Shown: in pieces, positions 2,713 to 62,952 of the stretch
How positions within the stretch are numbered: the first letter of the stretch is position 1
How the letters are laid out: each line of letters opens with the position of its first letter
Virus record (IMG/VR): IMGVR_UViG_3300017991_005548
Coordinates: 62,001-126,000 of that record
Reading direction: 5' to 3' (one strand)
DNA: 64,000 bases
The notes under the pieces: model-generated
Told to the model about the DNA's origin: nothing
Databases searched by the model: none
What the model saw: the letters and a program-made list of their open reading frames with translations, nothing else
Program-made: the position numbers and the translations under genes

Positions 2713-2789
2713 TGGTGGCAACGAGAGGAGTCGAACCTCCGACGCTCTGCTCTTCAGGCAGACGCTCTTCCACACTGAGCTACGTTGCC
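2713..2789 (-). tRNA. tRNA-Phe(GAA)
   Basis: Cloverleaf, anticodon arm TCTGC-CTGAAGA-GCAGA, encoded CCA. Confidence 0.95.
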
Positions 2790-2792
2790 ATT

Positions 2793-2868
2793 TGGTGGGA
2801 TGCCTCGGTATCGAACCGAGTTCTCTGGTTTTTCAGACCAGCGCAATGACCTCACCTGCTCACATCCC
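2793..2868 (-). tRNA. tRNA-Phe(GAA), atypical D arm
   Basis: Anticodon arm CTGGT-CTGAAAA-ACCAG, T loop TTCGATA, CCA. Confidence 0.85.
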
Positions 2869-2871
2869 AAT

Positions 2872-2935
2872 AAAAAACCCCGACCAGAAGTCGGGGCCAA
2901 AATACACGAAAAAAACCCCGACGAATGTCGAGGTT
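2872..2935 (-). terminator. two tandem intrinsic terminators of the Phe attenuator
   Basis: AACCTCGAC-ATTC-GTCGGGGTT+U run (2909-2935) and CCCCGAC-TTCTG-GTCGGGG+U6 (2872-2896). Confidence 0.85.
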
Positions 2936-2973
2936 AAAAAGATCTAAACAACACTTTGATCTAACTACCTCGA

Positions 2974-3018
2974 CTAGAGGTGGCTAAAAAATCGAAAGAT
3001 GTTGTTTAAGTTGTTCAT
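2974..3018 (-). CDS. Phe attenuator leader peptide MNNLNNIFRFFSHL
   Basis: 14 codons, three TTT codons, RBS AAGGA, between promoter and terminators upstream of two tRNA-Phe genes. Confidence 0.8.
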   Translation of the reverse strand: MNNLNNIFRFFSHL

Positions 3019-3043
3019 AATGTAAAATCCTTTTGTTGCCCCT

Positions 3044-3071
3044 ATTATAGGGTATCATCCATGCTTTTCAA
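3044..3071 (-). promoter_or_regulatory. sigma70-like promoter of the tRNA-Phe operon
   Basis: TTGAAA-N16-TATAAT. Confidence 0.8.
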
Positions 3072-3086
3072 GTCAGAACTGCAAAA

Positions 3087-7409: not shown

Positions 7410-7451
7410 ACAATTATTCCGACACTTATCCCGACATTTTGTCGGGATTCA

Positions 7452-7574
7452 GAAAAACGCCAGTGTATTGCTCATTTATACTACCTCACAAAGTTTAGAA
7501 TGCTGAATAGAACCTTATTCAAGTTCACTTTTAATAGTACTGTATGGGTGGGATTCGAACCCACATCTCTGGCT
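7452..7574 (-). ncRNA. circularly permuted tRNA-like RNA 1
   Basis: 3' half (GCCAG, AGAT, T arm GTGGG-TTCGAAT-CCCAC, CCATACA; 7540-7574) precedes 5' half (TGTGAGG, D arm, CTGGC; 7452-7490); linker holds the CAGCA element. Confidence 0.7.
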
Positions 7575-7650
7575 TGGTATCCCCAACGGGAATTGAACCC
7601 GTATCTGTTGGTTGAGAACCAACTATCCTAGACCGTTAGACGATGGGGAC
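7575..7650 (-). tRNA. tRNA-Glu(CTC)
   Basis: Loop TTCTCAA, CCA. Confidence 0.95.
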
Positions 7651-7657
7651 ATTAAAA

Positions 7658-7785
7658 ATGAGTCGGAAGGAATCGAACCTTCATTCCCTGGTTGATTTAT
7701 TAAACATCAAATAGTTGCTGGAACGAAACTTATACAGTTTCACTTGGTTTTATGTCCAGGAGTTCTACCATTAAACTACGACCCA
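7658..7785 (-). ncRNA. tRNA-like gene with CAGCAA element inside the anticodon arm
   Basis: Acceptor TGGGTCG/CGACTCA, D and T arms intact, stem CCTGG/CCAGG enclosing ~60 nt; no CCA. Confidence 0.7.
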
Positions 7786-7882: not shown

Positions 7883-8055
7883 ATACAGAAGTGTTTTATC
7901 CTGTTAAACTATCCCCAACAAGATCGTACTTTAAGTCATCTGACACTAACTCATTTCTGACCCCAGAATATATTTTATTGTTTTGAATGTCAGTTCGTAA
8001 CAACTACTTTACACTCTTAAGCCGAGGCTGGGACTCGAACCCAGATCTCTCCTTT
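7883..8055 (-). ncRNA. circularly permuted tRNA-like RNA 2
   Basis: 3' half (AGGAG, AGAT, CTGGG-TTCGAGT-CCCAG, CCTCGGC; 8020-8055) precedes 5' half (GTTGGGG, D arm, CTTCT; 7883-7919) with ~100-nt linker. Confidence 0.7.
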
Positions 8056-8146
8056 TGGTGACGCAGACGGGATTCGAACCCGCAAAGGAATCTCTTCCTA
8101 CCAGATTGAAAGTCTGGTTACTTCAGGCCAATTTGTATACTGCGCC
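8056..8146 (-). tRNA. tRNA-Glu(TTC) with long variable arm
   Basis: CCAGA-CTTTCAA-TCTGG; V arm AGGAA-GAGA-TTCCT; CCA. Confidence 0.85.
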
Positions 8147-8152
8147 ATTTTT

Positions 8153-8273
8153 TAGTCAGGACGGCTGGATTCGAACCAACTCCTTTAGCTCCTCAAGCTA
8201 AAATAAATATTGCTGTAGCGAACCTTATTGTCAAGTTCATGTTTATAACGTGCTACCATTACACTACGTCCTG
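8153..8273 (-). ncRNA. tRNA-like gene (C1-G72 body, GAG anticodon) with CAGCAA element between D and anticodon arms
   Basis: CAGGACG/CGTCCTG acceptor, 47-nt insert after D arm, TTAGC-TTGAGGA-GCTAA, ends A-CTA. Confidence 0.7.
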
Positions 8274-8318
8274 ATGGTCTGACCCTCAAAAATCATAAGT
8301 CTGATTCTCGAAAAGTCA

Positions 8319-8397
8319 TGGTCTGGATGGTAGGATTCGAACCTACGCTACTCCTCAGTCCAAGTGAGGCGGGATGACCAGACTTCCCCACATCCAG
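8319..8397 (-). tRNA. tRNA-Pro(TGG)
   Basis: CCTCA-CTTGGAC-TGAGG, CCA. Confidence 0.95.
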
Positions 8398-8503: not shown

Positions 8504-8512
8504 ATGGACAAT

Positions 8513-8578
8513 AAAAAAGCCCTCCTAACGCAAGCTAAGAGGGCACAAAAAAAGCCCTCCCGCTCATGGCAGAAGGGC
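8513..8578 (-). terminator. two tandem intrinsic terminators of the Glu/Pro attenuator
   Basis: GCCCT...AGGGC+U7 (8547-8578) and GCCCTC...GAGGGC+U6 (8513-8544). Confidence 0.8.
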
Positions 8579-8600
8579 CAAAATCATAGTTATGATCTAA

Positions 8601-8678
8601 CTACAGATCGGCTGACCTCCTGCCAAAGGCTGGCGGTTCTTCTCGTTCTGGTTCTCGAATGTACATGTAGTTGTTCAT
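8601..8678 (-). CDS. Glu/Pro attenuator leader peptide MNNYMYIREPEREEPPAFGRRSADL
   Basis: 25 codons with GAA x4 and CCA/CCG x3; RBS AAAGGA. Confidence 0.8.
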   Translation of the reverse strand: MNNYMYIREPEREEPPAFGRRSADL

Positions 8679-8703
8679 AACAAATTTTCCTTTCGTTACC
8701 CCC

Positions 8704-8731
8704 ATTATAAACCATCCTAGAGACTTTTCAA
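8704..8731 (-). promoter_or_regulatory. promoter of the Glu/Pro tRNA operon
   Basis: TTGAAA-N16-TATAAT. Confidence 0.8.
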
Positions 8732-8815
8732 GTCGAATTTGAAAATTTTTAGCAAAGTAATAAAAATAAAACGATTATGGCGACTTCCATATATACTGGA
8801 TTACACCAGAAACAA

Positions 8816-27538: not shown

Positions 27539-28210
27539 CTATCCCAACCATTTGTCTCTTTTAAATCCACCTATTTCTTGAATGCCTCCCATAATTTTTT
27601 GTTTTATTTCAACGCTGTGTAATCTTACTGTGCAAATTCCGTATTTTAGTTTACCCTGAAATTCGCTAGATTTAAAATAACATTTTCTCAAATTTTCTTT
27701 CGTCAAACTAAGTGCATTAAGCCAAAATTCAACAATCTCTTGTTCAGAAACTCCATTGTTTGTATAGGCATTTATAGAAAGAGCAAATCTTTTTTCTTCA
27801 AACTCAAAGTGTTCTCTAAGGAACTTCATAAAAAGAATCATCATGTCAATATCGCTATTGCAGAATGTCACTCCTTTATTGGATTCTTTTGTTCCTTCTG
27901 CCCAATAAAGAATACAGCCAACCCGAAAACTTTCAGATATTTTAGCAAGTGCTCTTCCATCAGTTTGCCACTTCCTTCTTTTTCTTCTGAATTTTTCCGA
28001 ATATTTCTCCTGTTTACCAAAATAACCACCTTTTCTTGTTTTTGTCCTGTGCCGCAATTTTAGGTTTTCTATTTGTTCTTTCGTTAGTTGAATATCTCGA
28101 ACCCATAAACTAACAGACGATTGAGACACATCTAGAATCTTGGCTATTTTCTTTATAGATTGTCCACTTTTTCTTAGTTCTCTTGCTTTGTTTCTTTCGA
28201 CTTTTTTCAT
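27539..28210 (-). mobile_element. HTH + LAGLIDADG-like putative homing endonuclease inside tRNA operon
   Basis: N-terminal HTH (GQSIKKIAKILDVSQSSVSLW), LYWAEG, FCNSD; likely start MKK at 28210. Confidence 0.6.
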
Positions 28211-28268
28211 TTTCGAACCCCCATAGTTATATGTGATATAACATATTATACAGCAAGTTCGAACTTTT

Positions 28269-28343
28269 TGGTAGCAGTATCGGGACTTGAACCCGAACGG
28301 CACTCCTTATGAAAGAGTCGCACTACCATTATGCTATACTGCT
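28269..28343 (-). tRNA. tRNA-Met or Ile2 (CAT)
   Basis: ACTCT-TTCATAA-GGAGT, CCA. Confidence 0.85.
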
Positions 28344-29576: not shown

Positions 29577-29584
29577 TCAGGCAC

Positions 29585-29617
29585 AAAAAAAGCCCAAGCT
29601 CCTTAGAGCCTGGGCTT
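29585..29617 (-). terminator. attenuator terminator of the Arg-led tRNA operon
   Basis: AAGCCCAGGCTC-TAAG-GAGCTTGGGCTT + U run. Confidence 0.85.
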
Positions 29618-29635
29618 CGTAAATCTGCTTATCTA

Positions 29636-29716
29636 TCAGAACATGCGATAGCGCAGATCAGAAGCCCTGTGGCTCCAATCGCGTCTAATAATATGCATGT
29701 CTCTAACAACGTTCAT
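29636..29716 (-). CDS. multi-amino-acid attenuator leader peptide MNVVRDMHIIRRDWSHRASDLRYRMF
   Basis: 26 codons; RBS AAGGA; residues 3-14 are only V,R,D,M,H,I,W. Confidence 0.8.
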   Translation of the reverse strand: MNVVRDMHIIRRDWSHRASDLRYRMF

Positions 29717-29813
29717 TTTTCTTAAATCCTTATTCGATTTAGTTTTTCAACTTACCCTCATTAGTCACATTTGATTTGAGTTTTTCTCAGATCTGTACCA
29801 AGAAGTTATTATC

Positions 29814-29841
29814 ATTATAAGCCTTATTCAGAGTATTTCAA
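29814..29841 (-). promoter_or_regulatory. promoter of the Arg-led tRNA operon
   Basis: TTGAAA-N16-TATAAT. Confidence 0.8.
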
Positions 29842-29867
29842 GTCGTCTTTGAAGATTTTCTTGAATT

Positions 29868-33997: not shown

Positions 33998-34028
33998 CGT
34001 ACCATCCTCCTATTGTTGGTTTTGTGTC

Positions 34029-34094
34029 AAAAAAAAGACCAGTCAAACTTGGTTCCGAGTCCCATCTCGCGTATGGAACAAAGTCTAACTGGTC
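34029..34094 (-). terminator. long terminator-like hairpin just upstream of the TROVE-like gene
   Basis: GACCAGTTAGACTT/AAGTTTGACTGGTC + U8. Confidence 0.7.
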
Positions 34095-34111
34095 AAAGTT
34101 AAAAATCGGAA

Positions 34112-34459
34112 CAGGTTAGCAATTTTGGTTTTCATTTCAAGTGAAAGTTTTGGTTGCTGTAACTAACCTTCTATCCTAAATTAAAAATTTGAACAGACTG
34201 ACTTGTTTTTTTTAGCATAAAAAATTTTGAGTTGCTGAATGCAGTCTTATATCAAATTGTTTTTCTAAATTTTCCTTTTTCTTGTTTTCAAAGAAACAAG
34301 TGAAACAGCTTGGGTTTTCCATCCTTTATTTCAGACCTCGATGAATTTGGGTCCTCAAATTTATTTTTAAAACCCTCTCGACTGGGTTCTCGTTTTATTT
34401 CTGTCAGGGCGACTCTGACGCTCGTTTTATCGTGTTTTTTGGTTGCAGTAACCAAGCTT
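34112..34459 (-). ncRNA. structured leader with three CAGCAA elements and anticodon-loop mimics
   Basis: AAG-N8-C(A/T)GCAA at 34154-70, 34232-48, 34443-59, each closed by a helix+CTG; TTTCA-CTTGAAA-TGAAA and T6-ATGCTAA-A6 hairpins. Confidence 0.7.
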
Positions 34460-34477
34460 TATTCAGTTGTTGGTTCC

Positions 34478-34505
34478 ATTATAAGGATTACGAAAAACTT
34501 TTCAA
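34478..34505 (-). promoter_or_regulatory. promoter of TROVE leader
   Basis: TTGAAA-N16-TATAAT. Confidence 0.8.
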
Positions 34506-34534
34506 GTCGGTTTTGAATATTTTTTTTGAATTTT

Positions 34535-40473: not shown

Positions 40474-40678
40474 TCACCATTATACAGCCAAGATTAGTAT
40501 CAAAGTAACTAAGTCCATATTCTTCCAGAACTTCTAGGACCAGTTCCCTCATTTTAAGGGAATTTCCTGTAACAACCTCAAAAGGAGGGTCATAATTAAA
40601 AATATGAGAGTCAAGTAAAGACCGAACATCTTGATGCTTAACCCCATGTAAATCTAACTTCATTTTCCGTGTAACCAA
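40451..40678 (-). CDS. Smr-domain-like small protein
   Basis: LDLHG...VVTGNS motif. Confidence 0.6.
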   Translation of the reverse strand: MVTRKMKLDLHGVKHQDVRSLLDSHIFNYDPPFEVVTGNSLKMRELVLEVLEEYGLSYFDTNLGCIMVIEEPNKR

Positions 40679-41325
40679 CCCTTCCGATTATGAGTCTCTT
40701 TCATTTGAACCTCTTCGGAAGGGACATAAAGACAGTGGTCCTGGATATATCGTTGAACTTCTTCGTCCAAATATGGCAAAAAGTCTGATCTGCCATGTTT
40801 TTTGAAGTGATCTCTTGCCATAGTAGACGAACATTCGGTAATTTTGTCTTCTACGTCCAAGAAAAGATGGGGAGGATTCTTATACCATCGATATTTCTTC
40901 TTCAATTCGATTCCACTTCTTGTTACAACAACAAATTTGGCAATTTCCCGTAATTTTTTGAAATTATGCCAGTTAATGAAGTTGTTTACGTTGTCAGCAC
41001 CAATGATAAAACTGATATCAACATCAAGTTGTGGGTCTTTGAGGAGGGTTTGGACTAATTCGAAGGTCGAACCACTCAGTTCATGTCTAATTTCGTAATC
41101 AAATACATGAAGTTTCGGATTTTTTCTGCAAGCGATAGCGCACATCCTGAGTCTGTGTAAATTAAGCTCTAAATTCTTACCAAATCGATGTTTATTGCAA
41201 GGCAAGAGCCAAACTTCATCAAATTTTCCTTTTTCAAGGACAAATTCAGCTACTTGTATATGAGCAAGTGTTGGGGGATTGAAAGCCCCGCCAAGAATGG
41301 CAATTTTAGTCATAGTTTTCTCCAA
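40660..41325 (-). CDS. nadD: nicotinate/nicotinamide mononucleotide adenylyltransferase
   Basis: GGAFNPPTLAH, FIIGADN...W, CSSTMAR. Confidence 0.9.
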   Translation of the reverse strand: MEKTMTKIAILGGAFNPPTLAHIQVAEFVLEKGKFDEVWLLPCNKHRFGKNLELNLHRLRMCAIACRKNPKLHVFDYEIRHELSGSTFELVQTLLKDPQLDVDISFIIGADNVNNFINWHNFKKLREIAKFVVVTRSGIELKKKYRWYKNPPHLFLDVEDKITECSSTMARDHFKKHGRSDFLPYLDEEVQRYIQDHCLYVPSEEVQMKETHNRKGWLHGK

Positions 41326-41428: not shown

Positions 41429-41562
41429 TGGACAAGACGGGATTCGAACCCGCAAATCGAGATGCCTCACCCATTGCTTAGGAGAAAAATAACTCCTGCC
41501 CATGGTAGCGACATTACTCTTAAGACCAGAGCCTCAACTTTGCCAATTTAAGTTACTTGCCC
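41429..41562 (-). ncRNA. tRNA-like RNA with branched ~75-nt insert replacing the anticodon loop
   Basis: GGGCAAG/CTTGTCC acceptor, D arm, T arm GCGGG-TTCGAAT-CCCGT; two inserted hairpins; no CCA. Confidence 0.65.
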
Positions 41563-41576
41563 GTCTTGTCAAATTT

Positions 41577-41698
41577 TGGCGGATGAGGTAGGATTCGAAC
41601 CTACACTGTAGCGGTTTCTGTTTTTTGGTTGCTGAAGAGAACCTTTTTGTCAAGTTCATTTTTTGGACCGCCGTCTCTGCCAGTTGGACTACTCATCC
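41577..41698 (-). ncRNA. tRNA-like gene with CAGCAA element in the anticodon loop
   Basis: GGATGAG/CTCATCC-GCCA; stem GCGGT/ACCGC encloses 51 nt. Confidence 0.75.
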
Positions 41699-41951: not shown

Positions 41952-42689
41952 TTATACCCCAAAAATCAATAATTCAAAATCGCCATTCTCATGTTCTACG
42001 ATTGCAGAGCAATGCTCTACCCAATCTCCGCAGTTATAGTAGTCAATCCCATCAATTTTTTTGATTATAGGAGAATGAACATGACCACATATAACTCCAT
42101 CGCAATGATTCTCTTTGGCATACTCTGAAAGGAGACCTTCAAACTCTCCAACATAAGTAACAGCTTTTTTAAAATTTTCCCTGGCAAACTTTGATAAACG
42201 AACTCTTTTCACTCCGAACATCCTTAAACATCTTGCCAGGAACTCATTCATTGAAACAAGAGTGTCATAACCCCAACTTCCAACCTTTGAGATCATGACT
42301 CCAATTCTTGAAAAAAGAATGAAATCAAACTTATCTCCATGAGTGATGTAATACTTCTTTCCAAAACTGTGATAATATGTTTCTTTACAAATTTCCAGGT
42401 TCGGATAATGAAAACTGTCCAAAAGTTCCATCATACCATGATCATGATTTCCTAAAACATAATGGACGTTACAGTGTTTTGACATTTTTAGAAGTCTTCT
42501 AATGACTTCTGTTTGGTTTTTATCCCATTTAGTTCTGTCTAATCTCCAAAGATCAAAGATATCTCCGATAAGATATAAATTGTCACATTCAGTCTCTTTT
42601 AGGAATTTAAGTAGTTCTTTAGATTTGCATCCAACACTGGCCATGTGGCAGTCTGAGATGAATACTGCTCGGTACTTAGTTTTACTCAT
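41952..42689 (-). CDS. LpxH-like calcineurin-type metallophosphoesterase
   Basis: FISDCH, GDIFD, GNHD, THGD, GHVH, NCGDW; likely start MSKTK at 42689. Confidence 0.85.
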   Translation of the reverse strand: MSKTKYRAVFISDCHMASVGCKSKELLKFLKETECDNLYLIGDIFDLWRLDRTKWDKNQTEVIRRLLKMSKHCNVHYVLGNHDHGMMELLDSFHYPNLEICKETYYHSFGKKYYITHGDKFDFILFSRIGVMISKVGSWGYDTLVSMNEFLARCLRMFGVKRVRLSKFARENFKKAVTYVGEFEGLLSEYAKENHCDGVICGHVHSPIIKKIDGIDYYNCGDWVEHCSAIVEHENGDFELLIFGV

Positions 42690-42777
42690 ATTTTTCCTCC
42701 TATAAGTAGTAAGGAATAATACTGAGAAAACAGGATAAAACCTACTCAATAATGAGTTGTTAACCAAGTATTAATAT

Positions 42778-44213: not shown

Positions 44214-44233
44214 TTGGCTATCAATTAAGCCAT

Positions 44234-44266
44234 AAAAAAACCCCGTTCGGAAAACCGAACGGGGTT
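44234..44266 (-). terminator. attenuator terminator of the Cys/Tyr/Leu/Ser tRNA operon
   Basis: AACCCCGTTCGG-TTTT-CCGAACGGGGTT + U run. Confidence 0.9.
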
Positions 44267-44284
44267 GAAAACCGAGTTAAGAAC

Positions 44285-44362
44285 TTACGTTCTCTGGACG
44301 CACAACCCCGTCCATCTCAAACTGAGATATGATGAACATAGGCTGAGCGATAAAGATTTCAT
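44285..44362 (-). CDS. Ser/Leu/Cys/Tyr attenuator leader peptide MKSLSLSLCSSYLSLRWTGLCVQRT
   Basis: 25 codons; residues 3-15 are only S,L,C,Y; RBS AGGA. Confidence 0.8.
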   Translation of the reverse strand: MKSLSLSLCSSYLSLRWTGLCVQRT

Positions 44363-44401
44363 TATAAGTTCTTTCCTGTTAAAAATTCAAATTACAACCC
44401 T

Positions 44402-44429
44402 ATTATAAACTGGATCTGAAGCTTTTCAA
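44402..44429 (-). promoter_or_regulatory. promoter of the Cys/Tyr/Leu/Ser tRNA operon
   Basis: TTGAAA-N16-TATAAT. Confidence 0.8.
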
Positions 44430-44731
44430 GTTGAAAACGCAATTATTTCAAATTTTTCTTTTTCTTTCAGCCATTCGTACTCATGAAGGTAAGGGTTATC
44501 GTAGAAAATAATTGGATACTTTCCACCACCAGTACATATTGGGACAACATTATAGGATAGCCATTCAGTCGCCTCTTCAAAATCCATCCCTTCTCCCATG
44601 AACTTCTGCAACATAAGTTCATAAGAATAAATAAGTTCATCTCTTATGGTGATGCCAACAACACAATTGTCCAAATCATCTAGTTTAATGGTCCCATCAT
44701 CACATTCTTCCAATATTTTTTGAATATCCAT
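44426..44731 (-). CDS. hypothetical phage protein
   Basis: ORF track. Confidence 0.55.
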   Translation of the reverse strand: MDIQKILEECDDGTIKLDDLDNCVVGITIRDELIYSYELMLQKFMGEGMDFEEATEWLSYNVVPICTGGGKYPIIFYDNPYLHEYEWLKEKEKFEIIAFST

Positions 44732-46000: not shown

Positions 46001-46257
46001 ATGATATCCAAAGTGTTTTGGGTTCTTTTGGCGACAGTTCCGTATTTGGAACCGTATCGAGTGGCAGAGAAACGATAATAATCTTTAATCTTCTGCTGAT
46101 AATCTTCGTCAAAAGAATTGATGTCAACCCTACCTTCTAACACATTAACTGCATCAATTCGGAGTTGTTGGACATCGGGAGGAACCCCAAGTACATCATC
46201 ACCTATCTGCTCAGGCCCAATAGGTTCTTGGGGATACAGTTGATTTTGATTCGCCAT
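45997..46257 (-). CDS. hypothetical protein
   Basis: ORF track. Confidence 0.45.
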
Positions 46258-47269
46258 ATGCCTCTCTCAAAGCTTTTACCAAGCCTTCCCTTTTATCTTT
46301 ACCAATATACTTCGAGGGAATCTGAGGCAATACCTTCACAAAAATAGTCCCACCATTCAAGAAGTCAACTTTGATCTCATAGAATTTTTCAGTGTCCCAA
46401 TCTGACTTTAGTTGAAACGTGACATCCTTCTTCTTGAACAGTTTAACGGTAATGTTTTCTTCAGCTAAAATCTTATCAATTGTAACTTGAACAGATAGAA
46501 AAAGATCCGATCCTTTCTGAACAACCCCATCTTGCTCAGAAGGATAATTAACAACAACGTAATGAGACCCAGTATAAGTAGAGTCATCCGACTGATAAAT
46601 CGTATTTCCCTTGTCTTTGAGTCTCATACTGGCATTATGATTGATGTTTGGGGGGATCTGTATTCTCGTTTTTGAACGAGTTTGCATGTAGCCAACTCCT
46701 TTGCATTTCTCGCAAGGCTTGAATCTTTTTCCACTTCCACCACAGGCTCCACAAATGTTTATATATTGGAACCCAGGTTGATTTACGTGTTGTTGCCCTT
46801 GACCATTACAAGTAGGGCAAACAATTTCTTTTCCAAGAAATGCCCCAGTTGTTTTGCAAGCATCGCAAGCAACAACCTGTTGTATAGTGTGGTTTTTCTT
46901 ACAACCAAATATCGCTTCTGCTAGAGTAATGCTAATAGATGATCTCGAATCTGGATTGATCCGTTTTCTGGAAGGCTGATTGCTTCGTTGTCCCCCAAAG
47001 AAGTCTTTGAAAACACTCCAAGTTCTTGAAGTCCCAGAATGCGGATGTGGTTGTTGATTTCCTATCGTACCAAACCTGTCATATTGAGCTTTCTTTTGGG
47101 CATCCGAAAGGACTTCGTAAGCTAAAGAGATCTCTTTAAACTTCTCTTCTTTTGCCTCATCGCCAGCATTTTTATCAGGATGGTATTCCTTAGCTAATTT
47201 TCGATAAGCTTTCTTAATCTCATCCTGTGAAGCTTCTCGCCCCACCCCTAATACTTCATATGGATTCAT
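46211..47269 (-). CDS. dnaJ: DnaJ chaperone
   Basis: J domain HPDKN and CxxCxGxG repeats. Confidence 0.92.
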
Positions 47270-60941: not shown

Positions 60942-62952
60942 TTTTTTGTCCCTCCAGTTCTTCTATGACACTGTCAATAATATCTTTGAAAAGTATCGCA
61001 ATGTTGTAGTTCTCAGGTGTTACCTGTCCTCCGACTTTATCTCTGATCATTTCGTCAATAGAGATTCCTGACTTCAGTTCGAACTTAATTTGCTCACTAT
61101 GAGCTTGTCTTTCATCCTTATCTGTAAGATACAGATACCAATACTTATCACGATCAGTGTCTTTAAGCTTTGGATCTTTATTATACTGATTTTCGTGCTC
61201 TGGATTTGTAATTGAGAACAAATTATGCGCATATTCATGAACCAGAGTAGAAGCCTGTTCCGCAGGAGAGGGCATGTCAACCGTATCAATTGCGATCAAT
61301 GGAGGATTAACAAAGATGCCCTTGGCAATCTCATATGGAGCTTCGATTTCAGACTTCTTAAACGACTCTGCGCTCATGAATCCCCCTTTGATTCCCTGAC
61401 CAAACAACATCTCAACAGGGCCAACAACAACGTTCAGATTCTCAAATGAAACTTCCCTTTCTTTAGCCAATGGCTCAAGAAGTTCACAAGCATCATAATA
61501 ATCTTTTAGATCCCTAAGATGAAAAGAGTCTCCATCTCCAATCCTGATACTTCTGGAGTTATGATCACTACGAAATTGAGGTTTATCTTTCCCCTCTGGA
61601 ACTTCAGTTTCGTTGAAGTATCTGACTTTTGCCAATTGTGTAAGACGATCTTTATCACCTTTCACCATATTGACATAAGAATGATCATCTGACTTGATGT
61701 CAATCGTATTGGTATAACGATTGTATCTCGTAATGAGTGGGATGGTTACTGGATGGAAGAACTTCCTCCAGATTTCTTCTCTAACATAGACAGGAGTCTC
61801 GATAATAACAAACTTAGTTTTGGTATTATAATCAATGACTCTGAACCATGGGATCTGTCTATCTGCACTTAATTTTCCATTTCGAATCATAGATGAAATA
61901 TTAATAGGGAATTTATCATCGGTTTTAAATGACACATAGTATGGTGTCTTCGCAGGGTTCTCATGCCCATCCTCTTCAAATGAATAAGCAATCTTCATCA
62001 ACTCATTGGCAGACCCGATAAGCTGATGGAAGTTCCCGACATTTTTAATGAAGATGTTGCTGATCTCTTCAAAGGTCCAACCAAGTTTCAAAAACCTTTT
62101 GATAGCAAAAAGAAAAGCGTCTCTATGTGCTTGTGGTGCATCTTCGGCATAATCGCCAAAAACAGAAGGGTCAAAGAAGTATTCCCGATAACCATTCAGG
62201 ATATGCCATTCCTTTTCTGGGGCTGATGGTTGAGGATCGCTACCGATATTAATTAAAATAAAGGGAGCCTTCTGAGAGAGAAGATTCTCAGGCTTATCCC
62301 GCTTACGTCCATCAATGTCTATCTCTTCATAAAAATTAATCCCTTTGGTATCATGTGGAGAGACATAGCCCCCAAGAACAGTACCTTCTCGATCATCCTG
62401 GGTTCTCATTTTTAAGTGGGGAGGGAGGGCCTTCGCAACAGATGGCATACGATTGAGATTAACCTCAATGATTGGAATCCTGTCAACGTTTTCTCCACCA
62501 AGATCTTTATGGATTAGATCCTTGATATTTTTGAAGCCATCAAGATACCGTACTCTTAAAGATGAGAAGGGCGATCCATAAATGATAGGTTCTTTTGAGT
62601 AAGTTCCAAAAGTCTCAACGACCTTATCTTTGATCTTGTCAAAGAGTTCTTCAAACTGATAGTTAGTGAAATAATCTTTGTTGATAACATAGAACCTTCC
62701 AGAGTCGATATCATAACAGACCTGTAGAAGGTGTTTGGCATCGAATCCCTTGAACTGCTCCTTAAGAAGCTCCAAGGCGGTTTTTGCATTCATGCTGACA
62801 GGAGCACGAAAAATTCTGGATTTGTGGTTTTTAGTTGGTAATGACGCAAAATAACTAACGATTTGGTTTCTTAGATTCGAGGTAGTCTGTTGCTTCGATG
62901 TCATATTCAATTCTCGCTTTGAACTCGCCCAAATTCCACGAATCTGGATCAA
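60934..62952 (-). CDS. large hypothetical protein with C-terminal HExxH zincin-like motif
   Basis: TLVHEYAH followed by downstream E..A. Confidence 0.55.
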   Translation of the reverse strand: MIQIRGIWASSKRELNMTSKQQTTSNLRNQIVSYFASLPTKNHKSRIFRAPVSMNAKTALELLKEQFKGFDAKHLLQVCYDIDSGRFYVINKDYFTNYQFEELFDKIKDKVVETFGTYSKEPIIYGSPFSSLRVRYLDGFKNIKDLIHKDLGGENVDRIPIIEVNLNRMPSVAKALPPHLKMRTQDDREGTVLGGYVSPHDTKGINFYEEIDIDGRKRDKPENLLSQKAPFILINIGSDPQPSAPEKEWHILNGYREYFFDPSVFGDYAEDAPQAHRDAFLFAIKRFLKLGWTFEEISNIFIKNVGNFHQLIGSANELMKIAYSFEEDGHENPAKTPYYVSFKTDDKFPINISSMIRNGKLSADRQIPWFRVIDYNTKTKFVIIETPVYVREEIWRKFFHPVTIPLITRYNRYTNTIDIKSDDHSYVNMVKGDKDRLTQLAKVRYFNETEVPEGKDKPQFRSDHNSRSIRIGDGDSFHLRDLKDYYDACELLEPLAKEREVSFENLNVVVGPVEMLFGQGIKGGFMSAESFKKSEIEAPYEIAKGIFVNPPLIAIDTVDMPSPAEQASTLVHEYAHNLFSITNPEHENQYNKDPKLKDTDRDKYWYLYLTDKDERQAHSEQIKFELKSGISIDEMIRDKVGGQVTPENYNIAILFKDIIDSVIEELEGQKNE

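Follow-up and report, generated by a model that had tools for sequence, protein, structure and literature searches.

A putative ribosome-mediated leader-peptide attenuator of transcription upstream of tRNA-Phe genes in a huge phage

Analysis of a 64,000-nucleotide stretch of DNA (positions 62,001 to 126,000 of the IMG/VR virus record IMGVR_UViG_3300017991_005548, the whole of which is referred to here as the window) indicated that the region preceding two tRNA-Phe(GAA) genes on its minus strand, designated module A, is likely to regulate the phage's own tRNA-Phe genes by ribosome-mediated leader-peptide attenuation of transcription. Sequence analysis established the elements themselves, how they are arranged and conserved, and the correspondence of leaders to tRNAs, and the function was inferred from sequence alone, without expression, ribosome-profiling or termination data. 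The classical mechanism of ribosome-mediated attenuation is known, but three aspects described below appear to be new: its direction at tRNA genes of a phage, the composite make-up of the leaders, and the relay between two terminators.

The gene content of the window is that of a huge phage and includes genes for DnaB-like and other helicases, a ClpB-like ATPase, a methyltransferase, a LAGLIDADG endonuclease and an ADP-ribosylglycohydrolase. ARAGORN identified 34 tRNA genes in the window, and Rfam matches added three more tRNA-like genes; all are clustered and located on the minus strand. Module A and the two tRNA genes behind it consist of the following features.

3044..3071, minus strand: sigma-70-type promoter, TTGAAA (3071-3066), 16 nt, TATAAT (3049-3044), matching 11 of 12 consensus positions
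3028..3032, minus strand: Shine-Dalgarno-like AAGGA, 9 nt 5' of the leader ATG, read directly from the sequence
2974..3018, minus strand: leader ORF MNNLNNIFRFFSHL plus stop, 14 codons, with ATG at 3018 and TAG at 2976-2974
2997-2995, 2991-2989 and 2988-2986, minus strand: Phe codons TTT at leader codons 8, 10 and 11
2977..3008, minus strand: region 1, the 5' half of the 1:2 protector hairpin (-23 kcal/mol; RNAalifold consensus of five orthologs), holding the Phe codons and ACCTC (2981-2977)
2943..2974, minus strand: region 2, comprising GTCGAGGT (2974-2967) and the 3' half of the long 1:2 hairpin, with region 1 or region 3 as alternative partners
2909..2935, minus strand: terminator 1 (T1; -12.9 kcal/mol), with region 3 AACCTCGAC (2935-2927), loop ATTC, region 4 GTCGGGGTT (2922-2914) and a U-run of seven U (2915-2909)
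2869..2898, minus strand: terminator 2 (T2; 2898-2876 without the U-run; -16.1 kcal/mol), with region 5 GGCCCCGAC (2898-2890), a loop, region 6 GGTCGGGG (2885-2878) and then a U-run
2793..2868, minus strand: first copy of tRNA-Phe(GAA), with an atypical D arm (44.5 bits), starting two nucleotides after T2
2713..2789, minus strand: second copy of tRNA-Phe(GAA)

All of the elements listed in a preliminary description of this sequence were found to be present. That description had placed TTT at leader codons 8, 10 and 11, an ACCTC-TAGTC-GAGGT 1:2 hairpin over the stop codon, a perfect 8-nt pairing of GTCGAGGT with an arm of the terminator, and two terminators ahead of two tRNA-Phe(GAA) genes, and each of these claims held. 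The stem formed by ACCTC and GAGGT (2971-2967) across the leader stop codon, with TAGTC as its loop, is only the tip of a far longer 1:2 hairpin that spans 3008-2943.

Module A was found to meet four criteria of this class of attenuators that concern sequence and structure. These are 1) a short ORF close to the promoter, with a start codon preceded by a plausible ribosome-binding site; 2) regulatory codons cognate to the product of the operon, in this case TTT before tRNA-Phe; 3) an intrinsic terminator separating the leader ORF from the structural genes, which is represented here by T1 and T2 and by at least one terminator in 19 of 19 modules compared in this study; and 4) an antiterminator on the 5' arm of the terminator that is masked by a ribosome at the stop codon but not by a ribosome at the regulatory codons. 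The 2:3 antiterminator consists of GTCGAGGT paired with its perfect complement ACCTCGAC (2934-2927) in the 5' arm of T1. The duplex between the leader and the T1 arm had an energy of -11.5 kcal/mol, compared with -3.9 +/- 1.7 kcal/mol for shuffled leaders, and none of 500 shuffles was as good. The leader RNA as a whole folded at -55.7 kcal/mol (z = -7.1 against dinucleotide shuffles). The two 3' U of region 4 are shared with the U-run of T1.

The switch between the alternative structures was examined by constrained folding, in which a ribosome was mimicked by excluding from pairing all bases 5' of a point 12 nt beyond the first base of the A-site codon. Without a ribosome, the 1:2 hairpin, T1 and T2 were formed. 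When Phe codon 10 or 11 occupied the A-site, the minimum free energy (MFE) structure was the 2:3 antiterminator (-18.5 kcal/mol), even when region 4 was present, and when the stop codon occupied it, region 2 was covered and T1 was formed. A stall at Phe codon 8 still permitted a small 1:2 hairpin and T1, giving no antitermination, and therefore the adjacent TTT codons 10 and 11 are the effective sensor in the model.

The starts of the tRNA genes lie behind T2 as well as T1, and a route past T2 was suggested by sequence complementarity between the 3' arm of T1 (region 4) and the 5' arm of T2 (region 5). The resulting 4:5 helix of module A has nine pairs and an energy of -15.1 kcal/mol, compared with -12.9 kcal/mol for T1 and -16.1 kcal/mol for T2. 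When 2:3 pairing takes the 5' arm of T1, the freed 3' arm can capture the 5' arm of T2 before region 6 has been made, and with a stalled ribosome and a transcript ending just before region 6 the MFE structure of module A was indeed 2:3 plus 4:5. The 4:5 helix was in the MFE structure of the pre-T2 transcript in five of five double-terminator modules. In these modules the matched T1/T2 4:5 duplexes (-14 to -18 kcal/mol) were stronger than cross-family combinations (-6.7 to -12 kcal/mol), and thus do not merely reflect a generic likeness of GC-rich terminators. The 4:5 arms also differ concertedly between orthologs, with GUCGGGG/CCCCGAC in the window and GUCAGGG/CCCUGAC in the related locus L016. 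It is likely that the 4:5 relay accounts for the bypass of T2, although the order in which the helices form depends on kinetics and is inferred.

With respect to the preliminary description, the proposed 1:2 / 2:3 / 3:4 switch held in constrained folding with the ribosome mask, the dependence of termination on Phe-tRNA remaining an inference. The claim that a stall at Phe frees the antiterminator held only in part, for codons 10 and 11 and not for codon 8 with a 12-nt downstream footprint. The bypass of the second terminator, which had been left unexplained, has a plausible answer in the 4:5 relay helix found in all five double-terminator modules examined. Further support for the description as a whole came from three matching paralogs, from orthologous Phe leaders and from covariation among Glu/Pro leaders, all of which are described below.

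In the mechanism proposed for module A, leader translation, its coupling to transcription, kinetic trapping of the 2:3 and 4:5 helices, the physiological signal and the dependence on charged cognate tRNA are all inferred. Host RNA polymerase would start at the strong promoter, and the 14-codon leader would be translated at once by a ribosome. When Phe-tRNA(Phe) is plentiful, the ribosome would reach the stop codon and cover region 2, so that the 3:4 hairpin (T1) would form and transcription would stop before the tRNAs. When decoding of UUU is slow, the ribosome would stall at codon 10 or 11 and hold region 1, and region 2 would pair with region 3. The unpaired region 4 would then capture the emerging region 5, T2 would be blocked, and the polymerase would enter both tRNA-Phe genes. 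The new tRNA-Phe would relieve the stall, closing a negative feedback loop. The same device would be used for at least three other tRNA clusters, through composite leaders with codons of the tRNAs behind them.

The evidence for these other clusters came from the window itself. The extended promoter CTTGAAA-N16-TATAAT was found in six exact copies and one copy with a single mismatch, all on the minus strand, whereas only 0.27 copies were expected. Four of the copies precede tRNA clusters, and each of these four is followed by a short ORF and then by one or two terminators. Behind the promoter at 34506 there was no convincing Rfam match to a Y-RNA or another known non-coding RNA. Besides module A, the modules were as follows.

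8504..8732, minus strand: module B, with promoter 8731-8704, leader MNNYMYIREPEREEPPAFGRRSADL (8678-8601), T1 (8579-8553) and T2 (8544-8519), upstream of a tRNA cluster of Glu and Pro only (8503-7332)
29577..29842, minus strand: module C, with promoter 29841-29814, leader MNVVRDMHIIRRDWSHRASDLRYRMF (29716-29636) and terminator 29618-29589, upstream of the tRNA cluster 29576-27452
44230..44430, minus strand: module D, with promoter 44429-44402, leader MKSLSLSLCSSYLSLRWTGLCVQRT (44362-44285) and terminator 44266-44239, upstream of Cys/Tyr/Leu/Ser tRNA clusters (44105-39638)

The cluster behind module C contains tRNAs for Arg (four), Trp, Ile (two), Val, Asp (two), Met and His. Clean 2:3 antiterminators of 10-11 pairs were found in modules B and D, and module C had only a modest 2:3 helix together with a very stable terminator. 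The leaders were then scored for codons decodable by the tRNAs of their own cluster, with 43 long ORFs of the window providing the background codon usage.

Module A (Phe, Phe): 3 of 13 codons, p = 0.021
Module B: 7 of 24 codons, p = 0.009
Module C: 18 of 25 codons, p = 3e-6
Module D: 15 of 24 codons, p = 2e-5

No enrichment was found when the codons of each leader were compared with the tRNAs of the other clusters (p ≥ 0.48 in 12 of 12 cross-pairings). Each of the 10 anticodons in the cluster behind module D is represented by one or more codons in the leader of that module, and for module C this holds for nine of 10.

Orthologous modules were sought in related phages. Over the compared stretches the window was 100% identical to the 476-kb IMG/VR contig UViG_3300018080_008436 and to a second IMG/VR contig (99-100% at the protein level), which were the only two contigs obtained by scans of IMG/VR with a DNA pattern or a neighbouring protein; being identical to the window, they provided no comparative signal. 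The 524,692-bp metagenome contig Ga0180433_10000003 was also 100% identical to the window. No close relative was found among GenBank phages, as neither megablast of the window nor tblastn of the DHH protein gave any match, and blastn gave matches only at tRNAs and at a short stretch inside the ADP-ribosylglycohydrolase gene. Metagenomes are the only source of this phage, and GenBank holds no cultured relative. Lying between clusters A and B is the DHH phosphoesterase gene, for which hundreds of homologs (45-74% identity) are present in syntenic loci of phage-like contigs, and the orthologous modules, all from uncultured phages, were found at these loci by a tRNA scan followed by inspection of the upstream region. 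An LpxH-like gene inside cluster D was tried as another anchor and rejected, since its homologs were in unrelated contexts without a syntenic tRNA region, as judged from gene tables only. The Phe leaders found at the syntenic loci were the following.

L014: MNTTTNILVRFFSPA, followed by terminator(s) and tRNA-Phe
L015: MNNLNNNFSRFFSPLLAEVVIG, followed by terminator(s) and tRNA-Phe
L016: MINLNNSFFRFFSFLRLARW, followed by two terminators and then tRNA-Phe
L018: MKRINNKFFRFIFTRLSS, followed by terminator(s) and tRNA-Phe
L039: MNIFVQFSFFSFSIAR, followed by terminator(s) and tRNA-Phe

An R-F-F-S core was kept in the Phe leaders of these five loci, and insertions and deletions in the orthologous leader ORFs were in-frame, in multiples of three. 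The Shine-Dalgarno sequence is weak or absent in several orthologs, and the Phe leader of L014 starts about 8 nt past the -10 box. RNAalifold analysis of the five closest Phe leaders recovered the long 1:2 hairpin with little covariation. At other loci the composition of the leader differs together with the tRNA cluster. L057 has Tyr, Tyr, Phe, Tyr, Phe as its cluster behind the leader MRNRAYFYYFSKPAFGQGAIGML, which starts with MRNRAYFYYFS, and at L067 the cluster is Tyr, a weak unidentified tRNA-like gene, Arg(CCG), Phe, Cys and the leader, MNTLRNRYYCYFRNMPVEGVVAGVCS, starts with MNTLRNRYYCYFR, its first Arg codon being CGG. An exception is L033, where the leader has Tyr and Phe codons, yet only one tRNA-Phe is located behind it. 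The motif E-x-P-E-Q/R-E-P-P, or one closely resembling it, is present in all seven Glu/Pro leaders. The nucleotide string AAGAACCGCC, which encodes E-E/Q-E-P-P, is strikingly invariant among orthologs.

The alignment of the Phe family across the terminators was too divergent for column-wise covariation analysis, and therefore duplex tests were performed on each sequence and covariation was assessed in the better-aligned Glu/Pro family. In the duplex tests, the leader from codon 6 onward was paired with the 5' arm of the first terminator in 19 non-redundant modules. The complementarity was better than that of shuffled leaders at p < 0.05 in 15 of the 19, and the pairing segment (region 2) was always located between -38 and +11 nt relative to the stop codon. 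Since the sequences are related and hence not independent of one another, the shuffle tests exaggerate significance and their p values are not true probabilities. In the alignment of seven Glu/Pro modules, the 2:3 antiterminator was paired in 95.7% of cells and four of its 10 pairs changed on both sides. Controls in which the partner was slid by 1-3 columns gave 39-63% pairing, and no shuffle reached the observed covariation score. The terminator stem scored 84% in the same alignment.

These results bear on an alternative explanation, namely that the leader is a chance ORF, that T1 and T2 are constitutive terminators closing the upstream thioredoxin operon, and that the tRNAs are made by way of another promoter, a phage polymerase or a protein antiterminator. 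In its favor, terminators are common locally (16 found in 10 kb, 6.5 expected), there is a weak match to a Q-like antiterminator at 46211-47269, and three Phe codons in 13 are significant only at p = 0.02 when taken alone. Against it, a strong promoter sits between the upstream gene and the terminators, the 2-nt gap between T2 and the tRNA leaves no room for a promoter, the arrangement recurs four times in the window with matching leaders and also in many related phages, and the 2:3 complementarity exceeds that of shuffles and covaries. A chance ORF is thus regarded as very unlikely.

A second alternative is that the leaders are nascent-peptide arrest sequences, with, for example, R-F-F-S or E-P-P as the arrest motif, which sense something other than the supply of cognate tRNA, such as EF-P activity, a small molecule or general translation stress. 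The strikingly invariant R-F-F-S core and AAGAACCGCC string favor this explanation, as does the fact that Pro-Pro motifs are EF-P-dependent stall sites. However, the composition of the leaders follows the set of tRNAs behind them, whether Phe, Tyr and Phe, Tyr, Arg, Cys and Phe, Glu and Pro, the seven amino acids of module C or the four of module D, and the leaders of modules C and D sample nearly every anticodon of their clusters without any common peptide motif. Peptide arrest was accordingly given very little credence, and sensing of cognate tRNA remains the preferred reading.

The ribosome mask was also scanned along the leaders of the 19 modules. With the A-site on the main run of cognate codons, the antiterminator was the MFE structure of the pre-T1 transcript, and it was lost once the ribosome was a few codons beyond this run; in modules C and D and in the Phe module of L016 the loss occurred 1-3 codons ahead of the last codon of the run. 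Once T1 was fully transcribed, the terminator was usually the thermodynamic winner. Read-through therefore relies on kinetic trapping, in which the antiterminator forms first, as in trp; this is assumed, and equilibrium thermodynamics alone is no proof of read-through. In many relatives the antiterminator is already the preferred fold of RNA that is not translated, and thus their default state is unlike that of trp. It is possible that termination in these relatives simply needs a fast ribosome.

This last observation supports a third alternative, that the modules are general gauges of translation capacity, in which any slowing of the leading ribosome, by scarcity of ribosomes, stress or host shut-off, gives read-through and codon identity is of minor importance: in many modules RNA that is untranslated or slowly translated folds as the antiterminator, and termination needs a ribosome that has moved past the leader. 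This alternative leaves unexplained the enrichment of own-cluster codons, with all 12 cross-pairings at background, as well as the coevolution of the leaders with the content of the clusters, and it is considered very improbable in comparison with codon-specific attenuation.

Among known systems, the attenuators of pheA and pheST, in which a short ORF with Phe codons and alternative hairpins sense Phe-tRNA(Phe) through ribosome stalling (PMC3082878), provide the closest parallel. The leaders of pheA (pheL) and pheST (pheM) in E. coli and other gamma-proteobacteria resemble module A in the Phe-codon ORF, the 1:2/2:3/3:4 structures and the intrinsic terminator, and pheST (pheM) is especially close in logic, since it controls a component of the translation apparatus, as module A does. 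Module A differs from both in that it targets tRNA genes rather than protein genes and is located in a phage, in that it has three Phe codons instead of a run of five to seven, and in its two terminators with the 4:5 relay. The Rfam Phe_leader family (RF01859) scored 15.6 bits (E = 3.1) against module A, below the gathering threshold of 55 bits, with no homology in sequence or structure; therefore module A is not a member of this family by descent and is analogous in mechanism only. An attenuator ahead of pheU/pheV, the tRNA-Phe genes of E. coli itself, was considered as a precedent and rejected after both loci were read, as the tRNA starts a few bases past the -10 box in each and there is no leader.

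The his leader forms a chain of alternative hairpins, A:B, C:D and E:F versus B:C and D:E. By analogy, the segments proposed here, 1:2, 3:4 and 5:6 versus 2:3 and 4:5, would likewise form a chain of more than four mutually exclusive segments, but in the his leader only the last hairpin is a terminator, whereas in module A both 3:4 and 5:6 are complete terminators with U-runs. In the thr, ilvGMEDA and ilvBN leaders several amino acids are represented among the codons, and termination can be relieved when any one of them runs short. The phage leaders differ from these leaders in mirroring a set of tRNA genes instead of a pathway, and they represent as many as seven amino acids and almost all anticodons of a cluster. 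T-box elements likewise couple tRNA status to terminator read-through before translation-related genes, but they bind uncharged tRNA directly and without translation. No T-box (Rfam RF00230) reached the gathering threshold, either in the window or in the 10 related loci, and none was found at E ≤ 10 in 2860-3080.

No account of tRNA genes under leader-peptide control, whether in phages or in cells, or of phage tRNA arrays under amino-acid-specific control came up in a full-text search of the literature; most subscription journals were outside this search, and the absence of reports is not proof. Textbook accounts of leader-peptide attenuation assign it to amino-acid biosynthesis, to a small number of synthetase genes and to resistance genes. 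If the interpretation of module A is true, RNA genes would be added to its targets. Why phages carry tRNAs is debated, the explanations being compensation of codon usage, replacement of a degraded host pool and evasion of tRNA-cleaving defences. A sensor of the shortage of a specific aminoacyl-tRNA would mean that the phage treats tRNA supply as a regulated variable, per codon family. When and why phages use their tRNAs would then become testable, the short leaders being portable into reporters.

A bolder reading, toward which the evidence leans only slightly, is that this lineage of huge phages runs "tRNA on demand," with each cluster placed behind a leader that samples its codons nearly anticodon by anticodon. 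Decoding capacity would be measured per codon set and only the limiting tRNAs would be switched on, and the relay would let one stalled ribosome disarm two successive terminators. The limitation might be caused by degradation of host tRNA, by cleavage through anticodon-nuclease defences of the host or by a mismatch with the codon usage of the phage. On this reading, no ribosome-mediated attenuator of non-coding RNA genes would have been known before, nor any feedback on the tRNA supply of a virus. For annotation, if the attenuation model is true, a leader would indicate which tRNAs share a transcription unit and what unusual or intron-bearing tRNA-like genes may decode.

Many clustered tRNA genes are likewise present in the tRNA arrays of T4, T5, KVP40 and huge phages. 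At gathering thresholds, Rfam matched only tRNA and no cis-regulatory family in the window and the ten related loci, and the matches below threshold in 2860-3080 were driven by the terminators.

Both ARAGORN and Rfam were used to annotate the tRNA clusters of the window, which contain minus-strand tRNA-like genes carrying long insertions of about 45-90 nt.

7410-7575, 7658-7785, 7883-8056, 8147-8319, 41429-41562 and 41580-41698, minus strand: insertion-bearing tRNA-like genes

ARAGORN made no call for these genes, which are of uncertain identity and anticodon; Rfam called three of them. Between 7300 and 8520 of the window, the T-arm motif GGATTCGAACC occurs in nine copies, compared with six tRNAs called by ARAGORN and one further call made only by Rfam.

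A motif, AAGGTT-N5-CAGCAA, was found five times in the window against 0.47 matches expected, all five on the minus strand.

7516-7500, 7731-7715, 8226-8210, 41645-41629 and 34170-34154, minus strand: AAGGTT-N5-CAGCAA motif

The copies lie within the insertions of these tRNA-like genes, with one copy in a non-coding stretch, and the motif is conserved upstream of tRNA-Glu(ctc) in two loci of related phages (L024 and L025). It may mark a common intron or insert. Related phages also encode RtcB (L015, 17257-18948), which would be compatible with enzymatic splicing or repair of tRNAs.

A further copy of the strong promoter (CTTGAAA-N16-TATAAT) is followed by about 470 nt without a convincing ORF (34000-34506, minus strand) and then by a protein gene.

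34505-34478, minus strand: strong promoter
33997-32564, minus strand: DUF2828/DUF7788 gene, PHROG annotation "RNA-binding protein"

It is possible that this stretch of about 470 nt, for which Rfam returned no family match, is a non-coding RNA.

Protein genes were also identified within the tRNA clusters of the window. One encodes an LpxH-like metallophosphoesterase, whose top cellular matches are from Arcobacter and its relatives; the others encode a cytidylyltransferase-like protein and an HTH protein.

41952-42767, 40660-41325 and 27539-28303, minus strand: protein genes within tRNA clusters

These genes are presumed to be co-transcribed with the attenuated tRNAs (those behind proposed leader-peptide attenuators). 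In two related loci, the gene lying directly 3' of the attenuated tRNA-Phe (L015, 13773-14045; L016, 14589-14861) codes for a 90-aa protein that carries PF02912, the phenylalanyl-tRNA synthetase alpha-subunit N-terminal domain. No homolog of this protein was found in the window, where the matching slot is filled by a plus-strand ORF (1800-2711).

In two other relatives, a conserved element, about 40 nt long, lies between the Phe terminator and tRNA-Phe.

L014 12960-13000 and L022 10440-10480: conserved element, GTGGCGATATGGTGTAATT...

It appears to be a fragmentary or minimal tRNA-like element. Between the terminator of module D, which precedes the Cys/Tyr/Leu/Ser tRNAs, and the first tRNA-Cys are two near-identical 20-mers, each containing a palindrome (0.01 expected).

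44211-44192 and 44161-44142, minus strand: TGTTACCGANCGGNAATATT

This pair might be a protein operator or roadblock that provides a second layer of control.

In both the Phe and the Glu/Pro leaders, the orthologous ones included, an Arg CGA codon adjoins the regulatory codons, and CGA TTT TTT AGC is nearly invariant in the Phe leaders.

2994-2992, 8659-8657 and 8644-8642, minus strand: Arg CGA codons of window leaders

The leader peptide of module C samples every Arg codon type except CGA. One conceivable role of the leader CGA is to be decoded slowly, and another is to contribute to base pairing of the RNA in region 1 (the 5' half of the 1:2 hairpin).
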